Below are positions 8,154 to 26,479 of a DNA stretch of 64,000 bases, piece after piece. Below the pieces are notes generated by a model. That model saw only the letters and a program-made list of their open reading frames with translations. It did not search any database and was not told where the DNA came from. Position 1 is the first letter of the stretch. Each line of letters begins with the position of its first letter. The stretch comes from Malacoraja senta (taxonomy: Eukaryota): positions 20,336,001 to 20,400,000 of the forward strand of contig CM075987.1 of the NCBI GenBank assembly GCA_038087875.1. Reading direction: 5' to 3'. Made by a program: the position numbers and the translations under genes.

Positions 8154-9406
8154 CTTCATAATAAAGATGTATTTTAATTACCATTTGTTTCAAACTAATT
8201 TATGCAACTAGTGTTGCTAATTTGTGTGCTGGTGGGAGGGAGATGTTTTGAACTGAGATTCTACGTTTCTTTAGTAAATAAGCAATTAAAGTAATTGGAA
8301 GTAGAGGAAAGAACATTTAATTGTTAAGGGACTTGAGTTAAATTTCTTGTGCATTTTTTTTGTAAATCAAATGCAGCTAAATCCATTCGAGCTTCAGAGT
8401 TAACTGAGAACTCATCAGCTAATTGTTGTAAAATGGCTTGGTTCCCATGCTTTCCACTTTCAGAATGAGAAGGAAGTAAAGGAAGAATTGAAATCTACTG
8501 TGCGCTTCATGAATCATTGCTATCTGTTTTCTGGAGGCTTGATAGTTCTTTAAAGGCATAGAATAGGTTTACTGATTACTTCACAAATTGTGCAGTGACT
8601 CAAAGCTGGTTATGCAGGGTACTGCTTTATATTGATCATCAAAATATTATTAGTTACTTCCCCGGTAAATTTTACTTGTTCCTGAATTTTCTCAAGGTTT
8701 GTTTGTGGCATTTCTATACTACATGGAAAAGGGGTGGGGTACTTTGCAGATTCTAAAAGTAATTACTAGCAATCAATCTTAAAATTTGCCTGCTTTCAAA
8801 TGTCATGTTTGTTTTTAACTCTTTTTATTCATTAAATGCCAACCCTAACGGGACTGCTGAATGTGACCTGTACCTGGATAGCACGTTAAATAGACTGAAA
8901 TAAATTACTTTTATCATACTCTTTTAATCAGCTCTTTGTTGAGGGCAAATGATGTGTGGCTAACTGGCACTCCACTTGTCGTAAGCGATTTTGTATGTTT
9001 CTGAAGGGGATTTGAAGCTATGCATTGGGAGTCCAGGCCCTTCAATAGATGGATTTAACATTTTCTGAAATGACCTAACTGTCAACTAAAGTTGAATAAT
9101 GACAAAATATTTTTATGATTTTGTTTAAAAAAAAGTGTAATAGAATGTATTCAAAATGATATACAGTATTTAGACACTTATTTTTGTGATTCAATGGAGG
9201 TGGGTGTACAGGTTTCTTAAGTGCCCAGAGGATGTGGAATTTATAGAAATGTTTATCAGCTGGAATATTGTATAACATTTAAATATGTTTAGAATGCACA
9301 ATGGTTAAAGAAAATTGTATTAAGGTTATTTGTTTCATATTTTAAAATGTAACTATAGGACAGTATCATGTAATACTGTGTTTTCTGGGAAATGATATTG
9401 GGTACC

Positions 9407-9440
9407 TGTATTAACAATAAAAGCTGTTATTTTGTGTTTA
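9407..9440 (+). terminator. Candidate distal polyadenylation signal of FAM102A
   Basis: TGTA at 9407, AATAAA at 9416-9421, then U/GU-rich sequence, at the end of an AU-rich UTR-like stretch. Several more proximal AATAAA exist (e.g. 3048), so the true end is uncertain. Confidence 0.35.
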
Positions 9441-10561: not shown

Positions 10562-10710
10562 CTAATCTGGGATATTGCTTAATCGGTTATGTCTCTGTCT
10601 TGTGCTCTTTCTTCTTTCCACACACGCAAAGCACAAGCTTAACCAGATGTTTTCCTTGGGAATAATTTCGATGCCATTTGGAGTTCTGACTGGATCGAAT
10701 GCACACAAGC
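10562..10710 (-). CDS. MRH/ATG27-like (CD-M6PR-like) membrane protein, last coding exon (cytoplasmic tail)
   Basis: Minus-strand acceptor ttattttctcAG (10711-10713), phase 1. Encodes (G)LCAFDPVRTPNGIEIIPKENIWLSLCFACVERRKSTRQRHNRLSNIPD* with TAG at 10562-10564. The G-x-E-x-x-P-x4-W segment resembles the CD-M6PR juxtamembrane tail. Confidence 0.82.
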
Positions 10711-10824
10711 CTGAGAAAATAACCAGAGAGACTTCAGATTCCTCACTTCCATGTTGCTATTAACAAATAGTTATTTGATGGTTCAAGGGACTTAGCAACT
10801 TAAGGGTTCATGTGCACCAAAAAA

Positions 10825-11073
10825 ACTATATTGTTTGTAGTATCTTGTTAGTAACCCCAGAATCCCCAGACGAACTAGTTGTAAGAGATTTGTCCCTTGC
10901 CAGAAATCCATTATCGTCTCCCACTGCTGCTAGGTTAATTACTCCTGATCCATCCTTCATTATACATTTGCAGGAATTCAGCTTAATGCATTCTGATCTC
11001 TGGGAGAAAGAGCGAGAAGACTGTACTATCAGCAGCAAGTATACTATATTGTTTGTAGTATCTTGTTAGTAAC
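10825..11073 (-). pseudogene. Intronic duplicate of 186 nt of the MRH gene's first coding exon, flanked by 31-bp direct repeats
   Basis: 10858-11043 matches 13769-13954 with 9 substitutions by my count. The identical sequence actatattgtttgtagtatcttgttagtaac occurs at 10825-10855 and 11043-11073. Confidence 0.9.
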
Positions 11074-11624
11074 AAGGTCCAACAGCATTTAAAATGAATC
11101 AGAATGGCTTAAGGTATGTTATGTTCCTTAAGCCAAAATAGAGATAACTTAATTGGTTTGAAACATGATAAATTGCCAAACTATCTGTTTTAGTGGAGGG
11201 ATAAATATCAGTCTGGACAACAAGCATGTTCCTGTACTTATTTGAATTGGTTAAACAGCTCGGACCATTCAACACTATTTCAGTACACTGAGTTGTCACC
11301 CACCCCACTCCCCACCACCGAATGAATGTCTTCACTTTACCAAGGCGGTATATTAATTGATAATTGTAATCATGCTTCATCTTATGCTTATTGATCTATA
11401 ATATTTCGTGGTCCCAAAATACCTTACTTTAAATTCTTGGATTTAAATCATTTGCCGACCTTCCCCTTCCACCGCATATCTCTCTCAACACGCGAAACTC
11501 CACTATAAAGTTATGTTTGGCTGCTTGTAAATTAACCCCGCCCCAGCACTGTCCCATCCTTGACCCACAATTGATGCTGTCCTTTCTATCGTCCACTATT
11601 CCCTTTAATGTAAAGCAAGTTTAC

Positions 11625-11880
11625 AGGGCTTCTAGAAACAGGCCCATTGAGTCCACGCTGACCATCAGTCACCCATTCACACTAGTTCTATGTTATCCCG
11701 CTTTCTCATCCACTCACTTCACACAGGGCAATTTACAGAGGCCGATTAAACTACAGTTCAGCATGTCTTTGGGAGGAACCGGTTCACCCAGAGGAAACCC
11801 AAGCTGTCACAGGGAGAACGTGCATACTCCACACAGACTGCATCTGAGGTCAGGATCGAACCCAGGTCTCTACCAGCTGT
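11625..11880 (-). mobile_element. tRNA-derived V-SINE (HE1-like), decayed
   Basis: Reverse complement of B-box (ggttcgatcc) and V-domain (gtgtggagtatgcacgttctccctgtgac...). Confidence 0.65.
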
Positions 11881-12096
11881 CAACATCTCAAATCTTATTA
11901 ATAATCGAGATGCCATGCTTTGCAGTTCCTTTATAACGTTTTTGCACCTCTACTCCTTTAGCCCTTCCTTGAACATCACTAAAAGTTTTGATTTAACTTT
12001 TGGTCACCCCCTCTGTTTTTCCTTAATTTTTCTCCTGTAGTTTTGATGATTTCTATGTTAAAAATGCTGCTTGACTGAAAGCCACCATTAACCCAC

Positions 12097-12312
12097 CAAA
12101 CAAGAAGTAGGCTGTAATAGTTATGCTGAACACCACTAAGATGATGGTTCCTGGACCCACATCGGCAGGCTTGCAGCTGTTGGGGCAGGCACAAGGGCTA
12201 TCGATAGAAATCCATAACACATCGGGATTCTCTGCTTCTTGAGAGGGAGTCACTGAGCGACTGGAGCTGCAAATGTATCGAACCACTGTCTGCCGTGAAC
12301 TGCTGGGTGATG
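12097..12312 (-). CDS. MRH/ATG27-like membrane protein, middle coding exon (end of MRH domain plus TM helix)
   Basis: Acceptor ttacAG at 12313-12315, donor G|GTGGGT at 12096; 216 nt, phase 1-1. Encodes ASPSSSRQTVVRYIC...LWISIDSPCACPNSCKPADVGPGTIILVVFSITITAYFLFG. Confidence 0.85.
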
Positions 12313-12431
12313 CTGTAACGTATAAGGAAGAGAATTAAAACTGCACTGCAAGTGAGCAAAGCAACAAAAATAATTTACAGTTGTTGGTACCTTTTGATCA
12401 GTGAAATAAGCCAAAACACTTCAAACATCAA

Positions 12432-12724
12432 AGCTCTCTTATACCTGCATTAAGGAGGCAATTAAACACACCTGAGCAATTACAAACGGCTGTGAAGCCA
12501 TGTGTCCCAAACATTATGATGCCCTGAAATGGGGGGACTATGTATAAACACAGCTGTAATTTCTACATGGTGAAACCAAAATGTATTAAAATGGCCTTTA
12601 TTAAAATCTGACAACGTGCACTTCAACCACATGTGATTTTTTCTATTACAAATCTCAAATTGGGGAGTACAGAGGCAAATAAATAAATGATGGGTCTTTG
12701 TCCCAAACATTATGGACGGCACTG
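12432..12724. mobile_element. Tc1-like transposon terminal fragment (same family as 21586-22150)
   Basis: Near-identical to 21857-22150. Ends ...cactg followed by TA. Confidence 0.8.
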
Positions 12725-13009
12725 TATATTTAACAGGCAAAGGCACTTCACAGTAGAGTTATCAAACACAATTTGACAAGTTACACTAGAAACAGTTTGT
12801 GGTAGCTTATTTGATGTGGTAGGTTTTAAACTCAAGAGTCAGAAATTTGAGGGAATTTTCTACTTGGGGAGTTTAGCTTTGTGTTGTTGCTGATACAAGA
12901 GATGCTATAATCTTGGCATATTTCTCTTAATTCTTCCCTGGCTGCACTTGCCCTCCTTTCCTATTTCTTCAATGCATAATAAATCTTTACAAGAGCACAA
13001 ATTCCCTTA

Positions 13010-13135
13010 AGTCTGAAGAAGGGTCCTGACCTGAGACATCATCCATCTATGTTCTACAGAGATGTTGCCTGGCCTGCTGAGTTACTCCAGCACTTTGTGT
13101 GTTTTTTTGTTGTTGTAAATCAGCATCTATATTTC
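13010..13135 (+). mobile_element. Penelope-derived terminal repeat (single arm)
   Basis: gtctgaagaagggtcctgacctgagacatc...ctgagttactccagcactttgtgt. Confidence 0.65.
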
Positions 13136-13194
13136 CTTGTTTGTTCAAAACTCTTCAGTTTTTTATATGGCCTCTTAAACTTGACTAATACTTG

Positions 13195-13418
13195 ACCCAA
13201 ATACAAAGTGTTGTAGGAACTTGGTGAGTCAGGCAGCATCTGTGGAGGGAATGGTAGACAACGTTGCAGGTCCGGATGCCCCTTCAGATTGGTGAGGAGC
13301 CTTGACCTGAAATATATCCTGTCCGTTCCCTCCACAGATGCTGCCCGACCCACTGAGTCCCTCCATCACTTTGTGCTTCACTCACGATTCCAACATTTGC
13401 AGTTCCTTGTGTCCCCAT
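13195..13418. mobile_element. Penelope-derived fold-back element with TSD
   Basis: Inverted arms. ttgactaatac duplicated at 13181-13191 and 13419-13429. Confidence 0.72.
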
Positions 13419-13558
13419 TTGACTAATACCTGTTGATGTTAGAACATTAGGAACAAGAACAGACCCACAAGCTCCATCCATCCAGCTTTACAAGTTTAGT
13501 TTTCAATTCTTATTTATGGATCCTTCACATAAAAATTAAAAAAGTTGAGAAATCTTAC

Positions 13559-14015
13559 CTGAATAGGTGACAGTGAGTATTTTTGACTTGTTATCATAAT
13601 TGAACTCATTCAGCTTGTGCCTCCCATAGTTGTGAAAATTCACATTCTCTCTCCCTTGGGCTTGGTATCTGAAGATCAGGCAAACAGCCACATCCGAACA
13701 GTCAGAAGCAAACATGAAAGGTTCACTAAATGGACGACAAGGGCTAAATGAGTAAAGAATATTAAGATCAGAATCCCCAGACGAAATAGTTGTAAGAGAT
13801 GTATCCCTTGCCAGAAATCCATTATCGTCCCCCACTGCTGCTAGGTTAATTACTCCTGATCCATCCTTCATTACACATTTGCAGGAATTCAGCTTAATGC
13901 ATTCTGATCTCTGGGAGAAAGAGGGAGAAGACCATAATATCAGCAGCAAGTATAGCCAGCTGAAAGTCCCAACCCCTGTACTCTGCATCTTGGAGAGGAA
14001 TTTGTCACAATGCAT
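13559..14015 (-). CDS. MRH/ATG27-like membrane protein, first coding exon (signal peptide plus most of MRH domain)
   Basis: ATG at 14015 directly after a catAG acceptor; alternative ATG at 13988. Hydrophobic signal peptide (WLYLLLILWSS), then C-x5-CxC, DGSGVINL, YSFSPC, C-x5-C, NYG and LTVTY motifs. Donor G|GTAAG at 13558. Full CDS is complement(join(10562..10710,12097..12312,13559..14015)), 273 aa (264 aa from the second ATG). Confidence 0.85.
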
Positions 14016-16800: not shown

Positions 16801-17055
16801 TTCTTAGCTGCAAAGCGTGGGAGGAGGCATTGAAACAAATTTCTAGCATATGCAGATCCTTATGCCAACAGTTTGGGAACTTTGATTTCAATCCCTGCTA
16901 ACACACAGTAATGTGGAGCAGAGGTGGGGGAGGCTGTGCCATGATATCCAGGGGCTGAGCCACGTCACCAGCTGCTCGCTGTCGTTACCACAGTCCCCCA
17001 GCAGCGGGCGCTGCGGGACGCGCATGCGCTCTGTCCGGCTGCGCTGCCTCCTCAC

Positions 17056-17150
17056 CGTCTCCGGCGGCGGTGGTGGGTGAAGGAATGGCTGAGCGGGCGA
17101 GCCCGTAATTAAAGGGCAAGTCTGGGTGTTTATTCACCGGCCGCTGACAA
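17056..17150 (-). other. Putative non-coding first exon of the MRH-domain gene (5' end uncertain)
   Basis: Minus-strand donor AGACG|GTGAGG inside the CpG island. The first coding exon begins with an AG acceptor and so needs an upstream exon. Confidence 0.5.
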
Positions 17151-17302
17151 TACGTCGGGAGGTACGTGGGGGGCGGGCTGACTGACTGAGTGAGGAGCCA
17201 AGCTGGAAGCAGATTCGGCTTCTCCCGGAAGCTGCCTGGCGGAGCCCACGTGAACCTTCCCGTGACCCGGAAGTTGACGGCTCGCTGCGCAAGGTGGTGA
17301 CC

Positions 17303-17305
17303 ATG
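17303..17305 (+). CDS. DPM2: DPM2 exon 1 (start codon only)
   Basis: gaccATG|GTGAGT in the CpG island. An ATG-only first coding exon completes the 84-aa frame. Confidence 0.85.
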
Positions 17306-17368
17306 GTGAGTGAGAGGCGCTCAGACCGGCGGCGGCGGCGGGAAGGAGGAGGAGGAGGCGTCGTCGTC

Positions 17369-17416
17369 CCCAGCCCCAGCCTCAGCCCCAGCTCCAGCCC
17401 CAGCCCCAGCCCCAGC
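17369..17416 (+). repeat. (CCCAGC)n hexamer repeat
   Basis: About 8 imperfect copies at the start of DPM2 intron 1. Confidence 0.85.
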
Positions 17417-17579
17417 ACCCCCGGTCCACACCCGGCCCTAACCTACACCCTCTCCTCCCCCCCACCACACCACAGTGATTTGCTCAGTCTGATTCCGACC
17501 GGAGCAAGTGACGGCGTGGAAGAAGTGTCCGTCCGTCCGTCCGTCATTCAGCCCGCCAGTCCCCGCCCTTTTCACACAT

Positions 17580-20812: not shown

Positions 20813-21311
20813 CAGTGAGCCCACGGAGGCTGTTGCAGGAAATCTGAATGTCAAAGAGTGAAATGGTCTACACCATGAGGTGTTTCTATAGGTGCATCCA
20901 TTCTGTGTTTTATTAGAACCCAGGAATGCTCAATGCATATTCAAGCAAATGTTCATTTGCAGTATCCCTCGTCTTCCATTAAAAAAGATCTAAACTCAAT
21001 TTGAAGGAATTGATTCTGTATTACCTTTTTGAGTAATCCCTCCAGTTAGGGTATTGCATATTAGATGCACTTTTTGTTTGAATACATGGCCAGCGGGCTG
21101 TTGATAACACACCTGTAAAATGTTGTGGTGTATTTTATTGCGCTGTGGCATTTGAAGCAGTCAGTGAGTTTGCTGGAAGGTTACATGTCCCTCTGAAGAA
21201 GCTGATACTTGTGTAGGCATTGACATGACTTTGACAATTTTGTAGTGCAGCAGAGATGACAGAACTATGTTCGTCTTGTTTGCCAAATTTCTCTCTTTCT
21301 CTCCCTCTCAG

Positions 21312-21401
21312 GCTACAGGAGTTGACCAACTAGTCGGGATGGGACTAGTGGGCTCCAGCATGCTACTTTTCACATACTACACTATATGGGTCATTGTGTT
21401 G
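21312..21401 (+). CDS. DPM2: DPM2 exon 2, dolichol-phosphate mannosyltransferase subunit 2
   Basis: Acceptor ctctcAG, 90 nt, ATGVDQLVGMGLVGSSMLLFTYYTIWVIVL, donor GTGAGT. Human DPM2 as recalled: [30 protein letters not shown]. Confidence 0.96.
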
Positions 21402-21585
21402 GTGAGTATCAATTTTAAAAATGTAGTGATGTATTAACTTAAGTAATGTTGACATAATGCTTATGTTACTGATTTAGTCATCCAAATACACAAATTAATC
21501 CTTATTTACTCTCAGGATATGTGTGTTGCTAACCCACATTCACCCATAACGAGTTATTGTCTTTCTGTATGTGATTTAGAAACTA

Positions 21586-22150: not shown

Positions 22151-22625
22151 TGGTCCACAAGGCAGTCAATAGTCCACGTGGGGCAGCAGTCGCATGAATG
22201 GATGAAGATGGCAGACTTCTTCCCAATTGTGCTTCTGTAACATTCCAACACGTTCATGTATAATTTACCAATGCCATTTTTTATTTTTCAAACATTACAA
22301 CCTATTTTTTAATTTATTTGCATTGCAGTTATTCACTCAAGGCAAAAATAAATTACGTTGGTTGTATGCCCACTTTTCATATCCTCAGAACTTCACGAAA
22401 TATTCCACTGATATTTATCAAGCACATAGATTATTGGAATACACAAATCAAAAATCCTTAGAAATAATCAGGGAATAATATCAGACACTAGTGATTTGAG
22501 GCTCTGACCTAAGAATAATAATTTTGTTGTGCCTGTTTCTCCACTTTCAGAGATCTGCTCCAAATGACTTTTCACACTTTATCTTACTTTAAACCTGCTG
22601 ATCAAATTAATTATTGTGTTTGCAG

Positions 22626-22728
22626 CCATTTGTGGATAGTAGACATATTCTTCACAGCTATTTCTTGCCACGAGAATATGCCGTGATCTTGCCCGCTGTT
22701 GCTGGTCTGCTCCTGGTTTTATTAGTGG
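22626..22728 (+). CDS. DPM2: DPM2 exon 3
   Basis: Acceptor ttgcAG, 103 nt, [35 protein letters not shown], donor GTAAGT. Confidence 0.96.
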
Positions 22729-23869
22729 GTAAGTGCTCAGATTTCTTCCTCTCATTGCATAGTACTTGTTTCAATATAATTTCTGCCGTCACTTATTGCT
22801 CTGACTTCTTTAGTTAACTGACGGTAACTATACTTCAAAGTACTTCACTGAAGTACTTTGCAGCATTTCTTTGCTTCCACTTTGTCATAGTAGCAACATT
22901 ATAAACCTTTAAAATTGATACCATTTGTCCTTGCAGAAATATACATTTGATTAAATTAACAAAAAATCTATTAAGAGTCATACAGCACGGAAACAGGTCC
23001 TTCCGCCAACCAAAGATGCCCATTTAAACTAGTCCTATAGATATCTACCGCTGCTGAACAATACTCTTAAATTGATTTTCCTAGTCAATTTTAATTGAAC
23101 TCTCCTCATGACAATTTTGAATACTGATTTCAGATCCAGGTTTCTCATCCTCAAACTGAAATTTAAATTCTACCATACAATGACCACTCTTTCCTGGGTA
23201 GAACACAAAGTACTGGAATAGCTCGGCGGGTCAGGCAGCATCTCTGTAGAACATGTGTTGGCAAAGCTTTAAGCTTGAAACCCTTCTTCAGACTGATACC
23301 TTGTGTCTACTCTTTCCAGGATGATTCTTTACTGTGGGATCATCAGTTGGTTACCTGCAAGGTTCATGCTCTATTTAAACTCTCAGGATCTCTGTTCATC
23401 TATTATATTATTAAAACTCTGTGTGTGTGTTTATTTGTGGGTGTCAGATTTGGCCTTTGATTCCTTGTTCCGCCAAAACCACACGCAGAAACTCCGAGAT
23501 TTTTTTCAATTCGCTAGACATTACACTTTTACATACCCTAACACACTCCTCATTAAATTTCGTCGTTTTTATGTACATATTTTTAAATAGAATCCACCCC
23601 CCCTCCCCCCACCACTAATTTTTTTGAATCCTGCTAGCCAGCGAGCTGCTGCATGACTCACAGTGCCATCACAGATGTCCAATCACAATGGATCTCATTT
23701 ACCTATGATATGACATCACAATGGGTCAGGGCTAGGAGATTGGAACCTTCATGTGAGCCCTCTAAAATCAAACAGCTGCATGACTCACAGAGCCATCTCA
23801 CAGATGTACAATCACAATGGATCCCACGAATGCAATCAACCCGGCGTGCACAATCAAATAGAGCAATTT

Positions 23870-25712
23870 GTCCTACCCCCCTCCCTATCTACCCCCCTCC
23901 CTATCTACCCCCTCCCTATCTACCCCCTCCCTATATACCCCCTCCCTATCTACCCTCTCCCTATCCACCGCCCTCCACTCCCCCTCCCCCCTCCACTACC
24001 CCTCCTATCCTCCCCCCCTCTCCTCCATCCCCTCCTGTTCTCTCCCCCTCCACCTCCTCATCTCACTCCCCTCCACCTCTCCCCTCCTCTTCTCTCTCCC
24101 CCTCCCATCTCCTCCAACCCCAGCACTCACCCCCTCCTCTCTCTCCTCCCCCCTCTCCCCTGTACTCTCTCTCTCCCCTCTATTCTCTCTCTTCCCCTCA
24201 CTCCCTCCCATGCCTTTCCCCCTCTTCCCTTCTCTCTCCCCCCTTCTCGCTCCCCCCTTCTCTCTCCCCCTCCTCTCGCTCCCCCTCCTCTCTCTCTCAC
24301 TCCTCCCTCTCCCCCTCTTCTCTCTCCCTCTCCTCTCCCTCGCCATCCAATCTCTCTCCACCTCCCCCCTCTCTCCCCCCCACCTCTACCACCCTCTCTC
24401 CTCCCTCCTTACTCCCTCCCCCCTCCCATTTATCCCCTTCCCCTCTACCCCCTCCACATCGTATTCTCCAACCCCCTCTCCACCCTCCCCTCCCCCCCTC
24501 TCCACCCTCCCCACCCTCCCCATCACCTCTCCCCCTCCTCTTCTCTCCCCCACCTCCCCTCCACCTCTCCCTCTCTTCTCTCCACCCTCCAACTCTCCCC
24601 CTCCTCTTCTCCCCCTCCAAGTCTCCCCCTCACCTCTCCTCTCACCCCCTCCTCTCTCTCCCCCTACCTCCTCCTCTCCCATCTACTCGCTCTCCCCCCT
24701 CTAATCTCTCTGTCTTCCCTCTAATCTCTTTCTCCCCATCCGTCCCTCCCTTCCACCCCATACCTTTCTCTCTCTCCCCCTTCTNNNNNNNNNNNNNNNN
24801 NNNNNNNNNNNNNNNNNNNNNNNNNNNNNNNNNNNNNNNNNNNNNNNNNNNNNNNNNNNNNNNNNNNNNNNNNNNNNNNNNNNNNNNNNNNNNNNNNNNN
24901 NNNNNNNNNNNNNNNNNNNNNNNNNNNNNNNNNNNNNNNNNNNNNNNNNNNNNNNNNNNNNNNNNNNNNNNNNNNNNNNNNNNNNNNNNNNNNNNNNNNN
25001 NNNNNNNNNNNNNNNNNNNNNNNNNNNNNNNNNNNNNNNNNNNNCTTCTCTCTCCCCCTCTTCTCTCTCCCCCTCTTCTCTCTCCCCCTCTTCTCTCTCC
25101 CCCTCTTCTCTCTCCCCCTCCACTCCTTTCTCCACCACCCCCCTCTCCCCCCCACCTCTACCACCCTCTCTCCTCCCTCCTCTCTCCCTCCCCCTCCCCC
25201 ACTCTGCCCCCTCCCTTCTACCCCCTCCACTCCCCCTCCACCCTCTACCTCTTATTCTCCTCCCCCTCTCCACCCCCCCTCTCCCCCCTCCACCTCTCCC
25301 CCTCCTCTTCCCTCTCCTTTTCTCTCCCCCTCCAACTCCCCCCCTCCTCTTCTCTCCCCTCCAACTCTCCCCCTCCCCTCTCCTTCCCCTCACACCCTTT
25401 CCTCTCTCTCTCTCCCCCTCCCTCCCCCTCTACTCTCTCTCCCCTCCACTCTCTCTCCCCTCTAATCTCCCTCTCCCCTTCCCCTCTCCTCTCCCCTCTT
25501 CCCCTCTCCCCTTCCCCTCCCCCACCCTTCTCTACCCCCCTCACCCACCCGTCTCTCCCCCCCTCCCCCTCTACCACATCCCTTCCACCTACCCCTGTCT
25601 CCCCCTTTACCCTCCCCGCTCTCCTCCCCTCCCCACTCTCTCCCCCCTCTCCCCTCCCCCTCTCCTCACCCCTCCCCCTCTCTCCTCACCCATCTCTCCT
25701 TACCCCTCTCTC
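23870..25712. repeat. Polypyrimidine/polypurine low-complexity tract with 15-bp minisatellites
   Basis: Almost exclusively C/T on the plus strand; (cctccctatctaccc)n and (cttctctctccccct)n units. Confidence 0.95.
24785..25044. other. Assembly gap (260 N)
   Basis: Run of N. Confidence 1.
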
Positions 25713-26420
25713 CTGTGTGTGTGTGGGTGTATGTCAGGTTATGTCATTTTGATTTTGCCTTTGATTCGTTGGTCCGCCAAAACCACACGCAAAAACTCCG
25801 AGATTTTTACCATTTCACTAGCGATTTTACTTTTACATTCGCATATCCACTACTCATTAAATTTCGTCATTTTTCTGTACACATTTTTAACAAAATCCTC
25901 CCTCTCCCCCCCCCCACTCACTCATTTTGTCGCCTCCTGCTGGCCACCTTCTCATCGCGTGCCGCGCGAACCATAACGGCTGCTGCCGCCCGGCTCTCCT
26001 CCACTCACCCCCCCCCCCTGGTGCGGCTCTGTCACGCTGGCGGAAGGCACAGATCGGCTGGTCCCCCGCTGCTTTTTGTCGTCCTCGCTGCCGGCCCGCA
26101 CGCTTGCACTGTCCGAAAATCCCGCGCGTCAACGGCCTGTCGGCCCACAGGCGCATTGAGGGCGTACGCAGCGTCTCCACGGGCGTAGGCAGCGTCTTGA
26201 CGTCGTACGCAGCGTCTTGACATTGTACACAGCGTCTTGACGGCATACGCCTAGCGCGTGGCGTTGTGCGATGACTTCAGGCAGCCCCCCTTGCAACCGC
26301 GAGTTGCGGGAACTGACCCAACGGGTCTGCACTTGGTCTAGTATTATTTAAAAGCCTGTTGGCCTGAATGGCATGTTTCTATTTTCAAGTTGACAGTATC
26401 CTGTTATCTTCTCATTCCAG

Positions 26421-26479
26421 GAACATTTATTGCCATAGTTATGTGGAAAAACAGAAAGCCTACAAAGAAAACAGATTAA
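26421..26479 (+). CDS. DPM2: DPM2 exon 4
   Basis: Acceptor ttccAG, (G)TFIAIVMWKNRKPTKKTD* with a KKxx-type ER retrieval end. Total CDS is 3+90+103+59 = 255 nt = 84 aa plus stop. Confidence 0.95.

Follow-up and report, generated by a model that had tools for sequence, protein, structure and literature searches.

We analysed a 64,000-nucleotide stretch of the genome of the skate Malacoraja senta (assembly GCA_038087875.1, contig CM075987.1, positions 20,336,001 to 20,400,000; hereafter the window, from whose first nucleotide all positions are counted). Between a FAM102A-type gene and DPM2, its minus strand carries at 10562-14015 a real and intact gene of three coding exons for a type I membrane protein. 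This protein has a single MRH domain (named for homology to the mannose 6-phosphate receptor) and is a member of the superfamily of the cation-dependent mannose 6-phosphate (M6P) receptor, CD-MPR, and Atg27. As shown below, the skate gene is the orthologue of a single-copy chordate gene fixed beside DPM2 and FAM102A in animals ranging from amphioxus to jawed vertebrates. Many genomes already have a prediction for it and it lies within a known Pfam family, yet it is uncharacterised.

Gene structure and coding sequence

Splicing of 14015-13559, 12312-12097 and 10710-10562 on the minus strand produces an 822-nt coding sequence, stop included, for 273 amino acids, with no internal stop, two GT...AG introns and cumulative phases of 1, 1 and 0. 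The ATG at 14015 is immediately preceded by a TAG codon and is thus the earliest possible start; a second in-frame ATG at 13988-13986 gives a 264-amino-acid form, the same as the RefSeq form in Amblyraja radiata. The dinucleotide AG stands directly before the ATG at 14015, and an upstream non-coding exon is therefore possible.

Coding exon 1 (13559-14015) runs from the start codon through a signal-peptide-like N-terminus (14015-13914) into the luminal MRH domain, of which it encodes the first two thirds; an NKS sequon at 13592-13584 lies in this part. The donor GT of the exon directly follows 13559. After intron 1 (12313-13558, phase 1), exon 2 (12097-12312) encodes the final MRH strands, a CxCPxxC cysteine knot and a transmembrane helix (12154-12098). 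Intron 2 (10711-12096), again of phase 1, is followed by exon 3 (10562-10710), which encodes the cytosolic tail, with a G-I-E-I-I-P-x3-I-W motif, cysteines past the Trp, a basic cluster and the stop codon at 10564-10562. Ten cysteines lie in the luminal part, and the sole hydrophobic segment spans residues ~206-230, the only region with 19-residue windows of Kyte-Doolittle mean above 1.6. The tail is 48 residues long and includes GIEIIPKENIW at 10675-10643. The initial annotation of this DNA, made from the letters alone, had listed three minus-strand exons with canonical, phase-compatible splice sites, an uninterrupted protein of 264-273 amino acids, a signal peptide, ten luminal cysteines, an NKS sequon, one transmembrane helix and a GIEIIPKENIW tail of ~48 residues; all of these are present as described, and the gene is indeed visible in the list of open reading frames only as separate pieces.

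Around exon 2, the frame stays open for 14 further codons when the donor is read through (12053-12286, minus strand), which would yield a membrane-anchored isoform without the tail. Among RefSeq isoforms in relatives, that of Hypanus sabinus (P0002) corresponds to such a read-through, and that of Scyliorhinus (P0004) skips exon 2 and so has no transmembrane helix. Intron 2 contains a partial copy of exon 1 in minus orientation (~10859-11044, ~186 bp, ~95% identical), which spans from the end of the signal peptide to ...SSGDS and is flanked by direct repeats GTTACTAACAAGATACTACAAACAATATAG; at three codons this copy agrees with the A. radiata protein, whereas the exon 1 of the window differs. 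Both introns also contain interspersed-repeat-like sequence, at 11740-11900 and 13040-13400, for example a tRNA-like GGTTCGATCCTGACCTC core.

The spliced protein of the window is 97.3% identical over 264 positions to a RefSeq protein of A. radiata, "uncharacterized protein LOC116990771 isoform X2" (264 amino acids, here P0001), which exon 1 alone already matches at E = 1e-87 and 97% identity. This bears on whether the skate locus might be a decaying or non-functional copy in this species, or an artefact of annotation. The duplicated exon 1 fragment would fit such a view, as would the few exon 1 residues that differ from A. radiata where the intronic copy agrees with it. Against it stand the uninterrupted reading frame with its canonical splice sites, the 97% identity to the A. 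radiata protein and the retention of every family-invariant residue and cysteine, and we regard decay or artefact as highly improbable.

Distribution among animals

A search with P0001 returned unnamed orthologues in sharks, rays, the chimaera Callorhinchus (elephant shark), paddlefish, bowfin, gar, many teleosts, frogs and a caecilian. Models from dozens of species can be found in RefSeq and UniProt, every one of them labelled "uncharacterized", and a literature search by LOC identifiers and on Atg27 in vertebrates found no paper on this gene. The locus had been presented as an unnamed gene: it has no name in any species, but it is annotated in all these databases. Nor is it confined to the skate lineage, as had been supposed, since it is present across jawed anamniotes.

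The proposed loss in mammals proved too broad. A predicted orthologue (XP_074067168) occupies the same position relative to DPM2 and the NT-C2 gene in a marsupial, the bilby Macrotis lagotis, and retains 25 of the 32 columns found invariant in other vertebrates, including every cysteine among them. What remains of the claim is that no eutherian representative was seen, nor any from birds or reptiles: the rest of the vertebrate-like matches among the best 150 were of fish or frog, by name or closest similarity. The library behind this amniote survey consisted of predicted proteins clustered at 50% identity, and the human interval lay outside it.

Beyond vertebrates, a profile search of 1.84 billion representatives gave 508 proteins at E ≤ 1e-3. 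Full-length relatives of ~250 amino acids occur in amphioxus, Lingula, a spider, a nemertean, molluscs and a sea anemone, and multi-repeat relatives in amphioxus and sponges. Many family members are named automatically in UniProt as "Autophagy-related protein 27", and some of those from molluscs are labelled "CD-MPR-like" by NCBI. The suggestion that the skate protein resembles uncharacterised invertebrate M6P-receptor-like proteins is supported by these relatives. Those with a single MRH domain (amphioxus, molluscs, brachiopod, nemertean, spider, cnidarian) share with it homology over the full length (E from 1e-35 to 1e-11), the 10-Cys pattern, the transmembrane helix and a G-x-E-x-I-P-x3-W tail. 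They differ in that many keep the Q/R/E/Y sugar-binding residues discussed below, in their LPGLIKDG segment and C-terminal YxxPhi, and in their tandem arrays away from DPM2; the vertebrate clade is single-copy, stands on a long stem and has lost those features.

A quick IQ-TREE reconstruction of 97 sequences placed the 27 vertebrate members in one clade (SH-aLRT 100, stem length 1.13), whose inner order follows the species tree, with the bilby on a long branch; deeper nodes were unresolved. A homology search with the invertebrate alignment recovered only 6 family members, and no named CD-MPR or fungal Atg27. Thirty-two columns are invariant across the 26 non-mammalian vertebrate sequences, and each of the ten luminal cysteines is kept in 26-27 of the 27 vertebrate orthologues and mostly also in the 70 invertebrate members. 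The skate protein lacks none of the family-invariant residues or cysteines. Judged by these alignments, the family has been under long-term purifying selection.

A conserved position beside DPM2

The gene lies between FAM102A and DPM2, and a tblastn search of the window bears out this placement. Open reading frames of the Callorhinchus locus (L001), where Pfam labels NT-C2 and DPM2, located the C-terminal coding end of the FAM102A-type (NT-C2) gene at ~798-860 on the plus strand, converging on the MRH gene, and three coding exons of DPM2 (21291-21407, 22611-22769 and 26369-26476), also on the plus strand and divergent from it. In the window, in Callorhinchus, in Macrotis lagotis and in the amphioxus Branchiostoma lanceolatum, the three genes have one order and orientation, DPM2(-), MRH gene(+), NT-C2(-). 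The MRH gene is thus head-to-head with DPM2 and tail-to-tail with the FAM102A-type gene in all four species. The amphioxus member in this block (P0065) has the start of DPM2 117 bp away, and its shared order and orientation identify it as the orthologue of the vertebrate gene; a second amphioxus member (P0081) sits elsewhere, in a tandem cluster. Because the three-gene block is common to skate, elephant shark, bilby and amphioxus, the orthogroup dates back at least to the chordate ancestor. Adjacency to DPM2 is absent for the members in a nemertean, a brachiopod and a bivalve, which mostly lie in tandem arrays, so that the block is shown for chordates only.

Arrays of 2-4 family genes in tandem were seen in amphioxus, Lingula and Dreissena (L003 2866-17862; L005; L006). 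That of amphioxus includes a 551-amino-acid multi-domain member, and vertebrates have a single DPM2-linked copy.

A CpG island at 17000-17499 (GC 0.67, CpG observed/expected 0.74) separates the MRH gene from DPM2. Together with the conserved head-to-head arrangement, this suggests that the island is a likely shared divergent promoter of the two genes. On the other side, non-coding blocks at 8946-9417, downstream of the MRH stop codon and of FAM102A, are strongly conserved with Callorhinchus (L001 12234-12828) and are probably 3'UTR or regulatory elements of either gene. A run of 260 Ns at 24785-25044 falls within DPM2, between coding exons.

Fold and family assignment

P0001 matches the Pfam ATG27 family (PF09451) with 31.3 bits, above the cut-off of 27, and Man-6-P_recep (PF02157) with 18.4 bits, below the cut-off of 25.4. 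The latter match is limited to model positions 143-209, which comprise the last strand, the transmembrane helix and the tail. Among 24 vertebrate members, 19 match ATG27 and 8 match Man-6-P_recep at E ≤ 0.01, and all 70 full-length invertebrate members match both families (best E 7e-24 and 9e-23). Exon 2 of the skate gene alone gives weak matches to ATG27 (15.4 bits) and Man-6-P_recep.

The AlphaFold2 model of P0001, built on a 24-sequence alignment (mean pLDDT 74), comprises a beta-rich domain (residues 30-182), a transmembrane helix (197-218) and a tail helix (235-249). Its top 45 Foldseek matches in the Protein Data Bank (PDB) are all domains of CD-MPR or of the multi-repeat M6P receptor CI-MPR/IGF2R, with E-values from 7e-5 and probability 1.0. 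VIA-align superposed the model on the same domains with Z 13.0-9.3 over 121-139 residues (2.6-3.4 Å rmsd in most rows); OS-9, XTP3B, GNPTG, GII-beta and Yos9 followed at Z 8.2-7.0 and the next match at 3.8. Against the Swiss-Prot part of the AlphaFold database (AFDB), the best structural matches were fungal Atg27, with that of Yarrowia on top (3.9e-7), mammalian CD-MPR and yeast Mrl1, at 12-17% identity. At the sequence level, the invertebrate family profile matches bovine CI-MPR at 9e-84, domain 3 best, and the cysteine columns of the family line up with those of the CI-MPR repeats. The vertebrate profile, run against PDB sequences, gave only chance transmembrane matches to CD3-gamma, and two "CD-MPR-like" proteins of Haliotis used as PDB queries gave nothing relevant. 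In the predicted structure the MRH fold is firm: the Pfam, AlphaFold2 and Foldseek searches found it, and the CD-M6PR/Atg27-type layout that the initial annotation had proposed is backed by the ATG27 score and by MPR domains as the top Foldseek and best VIA-align matches. The solved structures that match best are CI-MPR/IGF2R repeats (Pfam CIMR), with Z up to 13.0, but these belong to a 15-repeat receptor, whereas the skate protein is a single repeat with its own transmembrane helix and tail.

With CD-MPR the skate protein shares a type I topology, a size of ~270 amino acids, one MRH domain (Z 10.7 to 1c39), one transmembrane helix and, next to the membrane, a tail module that contains Pro and Trp. 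The CD-MPR module, which we take to be G-M-E-Q-F-P-x3-F-W followed by cysteines, is matched by that of the skate tail. This common layout and size, the presence of CD-MPR among the best structural matches and the weak Man-6-P_recep similarity in helix and tail would be expected if the gene were simply the skate orthologue of the ordinary receptor gene, M6PR. We consider this extremely unlikely, in agreement with the earlier view that the gene is distinct from M6PR. Mouse, rat, human and bovine CD-MPR share no more than 16-17% identity with the skate protein, and the Man-6-P_recep score stays below its cut-off. The CD-MPRs of a bird and of the platypus fall in other AFDB clusters, again at 16-17% identity, whereas the fish orthologues of the skate protein reach 36-46%, and the family profile found no CD-MPR chain in the PDB at E ≤ 10. 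In addition, the protein has five luminal disulfides versus three in CD-MPR, its tail lacks the acidic-cluster dileucine end, vertebrate members have lost the Gln, the Tyr and usually the Arg of the binding quartet, and the DPM2/FAM102A synteny is conserved back to amphioxus.

The sugar-binding site

In domain 3 of CI-MPR, Q348, R391, E416 and Y421 are the mannose- and phosphate-binding residues (PMC12337314). We located this quartet by counting back from residue 432 of chain 1q25_A in the profile alignment, where all four residues fall on consensus Q, R, E and Y, and counted its conservation in a joint MAFFT alignment of 70 invertebrate and 27 vertebrate sequences. The Gln is present in 39/70 invertebrate members and in 0/27 vertebrates, which have Val, Leu or Met. 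The Arg is found in 37/70 and 2/27, the latter being the two skates only, and the Glu in 40/70 and 2/27. The Tyr is kept by 41/70 invertebrates and by none of the 27 vertebrates (Leu 24, Phe 2, Met 1). Twenty-two of the 70 invertebrate members have the complete quartet, and the vertebrate clade has instead fixed Arg116 and His133 (window numbering). An earlier candidate for the canonical Arg, the family-invariant R107 of P0001, which aligned with an Arg of CI-MPR domain 5, was dropped, as the stronger domain-3 alignment and residue counting put the canonical positions elsewhere.

The two amphioxus proteins date this change. At the four positions P0081 has Q, R, E and Y, and the DPM2-linked P0065 has M, R, Y and V; since P0065 and the vertebrate proteins are both degenerate, the DPM2-linked lineage had lost most of the quartet already in the chordate ancestor. 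With Gln and Tyr gone in 27/27 vertebrates and Arg in 25/27, the vertebrate protein is, on alignment evidence, probably not a classical M6P receptor, and the same replacements make the sugar-binding sorting-receptor function first attributed to the gene doubtful.

These counts also bear on whether the protein could be a working lectin, that is, a third vertebrate receptor for M6P or high-mannose glycans that sorts glycosylated cargo. One argument for this is the MRH fold, whose Z to M6P-binding domains is 10-13; another is the intact quartet of many invertebrate relatives. In addition, the skate protein has an Arg at the R391 equivalent and a Glu five residues before the Tyr equivalent, and the invariant Arg116 and His133 could contact phosphate. 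However, the replacement of Gln and Tyr is complete in vertebrates, the Arg is lost outside the two skates and the amphioxus orthologue is degenerate too. Many MRH domains, IGF2R domain 11 among them, bind no sugar. A lectin function of this kind therefore appears unlikely to us.

The cytosolic tail and the relation to Atg27

The invertebrate tail has the consensus G-x-E-x-I-P-N-x2-F-W-x2-L-P-G-L-I-K-D-G, and 53/70 invertebrate members end in a C-terminal YxxPhi. The vertebrate clade retains G-x-E/Q-I-x-P-x3-W and deletes L-P-G-L-I-K-D-G. Within the retained module, W247 is found in every vertebrate and invertebrate member, and P242 in 70/70 invertebrate and 25/27 vertebrate sequences. The ends of the tail vary between groups: four frog sequences end in Y-F-K/N-V, ray-finned fishes mostly in E-E-T-L, and cartilaginous fishes in a basic end. 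That of the skate reads ...LSNIPD and those of sharks ...QHK, so neither carries a C-terminal YxxPhi.

These features are best read against fungal Atg27, which has been stated to be present only in yeast (PMC7595595). The gene might nonetheless be its chordate functional orthologue, encoding a passenger and regulator of ATG9 vesicles that works through the tail and not through the MRH domain. ATG27 is the best-scoring Pfam family of the vertebrate protein, passed at 31.3 versus 27, the layout is the same, and fungal Atg27 from Yarrowia is the top Swiss-Prot structural match. Yeast Atg27 ends in YSAV, a C-terminal tyrosine sorting signal, with which the YxxPhi end of most invertebrate relatives and the Y-F-x-V end of some frog members can be compared. 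Autophagy in yeast does not require the MRH domain of Atg27, whose tail binds Atg9, and this would fit a degenerate lectin site (bioRxiv 10.1101/2025.11.06.685569). Against such an assignment, the ATG27 score comes mostly from the transmembrane helix and tail, a region that the Man-6-P_recep model fits about equally well; the luminal profile is nearest to CI-MPR repeats; some mollusc members are labelled "CD-MPR-like"; and the skate tail lacks YxxPhi. We thus hold functional orthology with Atg27 as a tentative possibility of low probability. The same caution applies to its wider form, a conjecture in which chordates would possess an Atg27 orthologue in the DPM2-linked gene, with a dispensable and decayed lectin site and a tail serving ATG9-vesicle traffic, and would apparently have lost it in placentals, birds and reptiles.

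Proposed role of the protein

The reading we prefer, to which we assign a probability of roughly 0.65, is that of a functional, chordate-old type I glycoprotein gene of the CD-MPR/Atg27 kind, whose lectin quartet has been replaced and whose product cycles between the trans-Golgi network and endosomes in a non-M6P or Atg27-like role. This reading joins established parts (gene structure, fold, orthology, synteny and loss of the quartet) to a localisation, a cycling route and a ligand that we infer. The protein, with its predicted signal peptide, one luminal MRH domain held by five disulfides, one transmembrane helix and a 48-amino-acid cytosolic tail, would enter the secretory pathway and become N-glycosylated. 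CD-MPR, Mrl1 and Atg27 each shuttle between the Golgi and either endosomes or the vacuole, and for this reason the skate protein may likewise cycle between the trans-Golgi network and endosomes by means of the juxtamembrane G-x-E/Q-I-x-P-x3-W module that it has in common with the invertebrate CD-MPR/Atg27-like proteins. The cysteines beside the Trp may be palmitoylated and serve as sorting determinants. The luminal domain would bind a ligand other than M6P or be largely structural; alternatively, the protein could act as an Atg27-like vesicle component and not as a classical M6P receptor.

Several points weigh against this proposal. The Pfam searches and the AlphaFold2 model used P0001, the 97%-identical orthologue, as a stand-in for the spliced protein of the window. 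Both Pfam scores stem mostly from the transmembrane helix and the tail, the luminal part alone giving 0-19 bits, so that the choice between an "ATG27" and a "CD-MPR-like" label is not decisive. The tree took in members of this family only. Loss of the quartet was read from a sequence alignment and not from superposed coordinates; 16/27 vertebrates have an acidic residue two columns past the Glu column, five before the Tyr equivalent, and the Arg and His that are invariant in vertebrates only could form a sugar site of another kind. With neither LPGLIKDG nor YxxPhi in the tail, sorting in cartilaginous fishes may differ from the route outlined above. Finally, transcription is predicted from RefSeq models in relatives.

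Significance

Deep synteny, a decayed lectin site and patchy mammalian retention are the noteworthy points of this locus; as the gene was already predicted and belongs to a known Pfam family, we regard the finding as a moderate one. Vertebrates are usually credited with two M6P receptors. The gene described here adds a third small MRH-fold membrane protein of vertebrates, conserved for more than 500 million years in a fixed position beside DPM2. DPM2 is a subunit of dolichol-phosphate-mannose synthase, and the conserved divergent pairing of the two genes suggests a possible co-regulation with the supply of mannose donor. The gene occurs in the fish and frog groups commonly used in laboratories and is tractable in medaka, a cyprinid or Xenopus, one amniote only having been seen with it. 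The contrast between its decayed lectin site and the intact site of invertebrate paralogues would illustrate how the function of an MRH domain can shift. A chordate orthologue of Atg27, if true, would explain why Atg27 has been regarded as fungus-specific, and loss of the gene in placentals, if true, would mean that the usual mammalian models lack a trafficking component.

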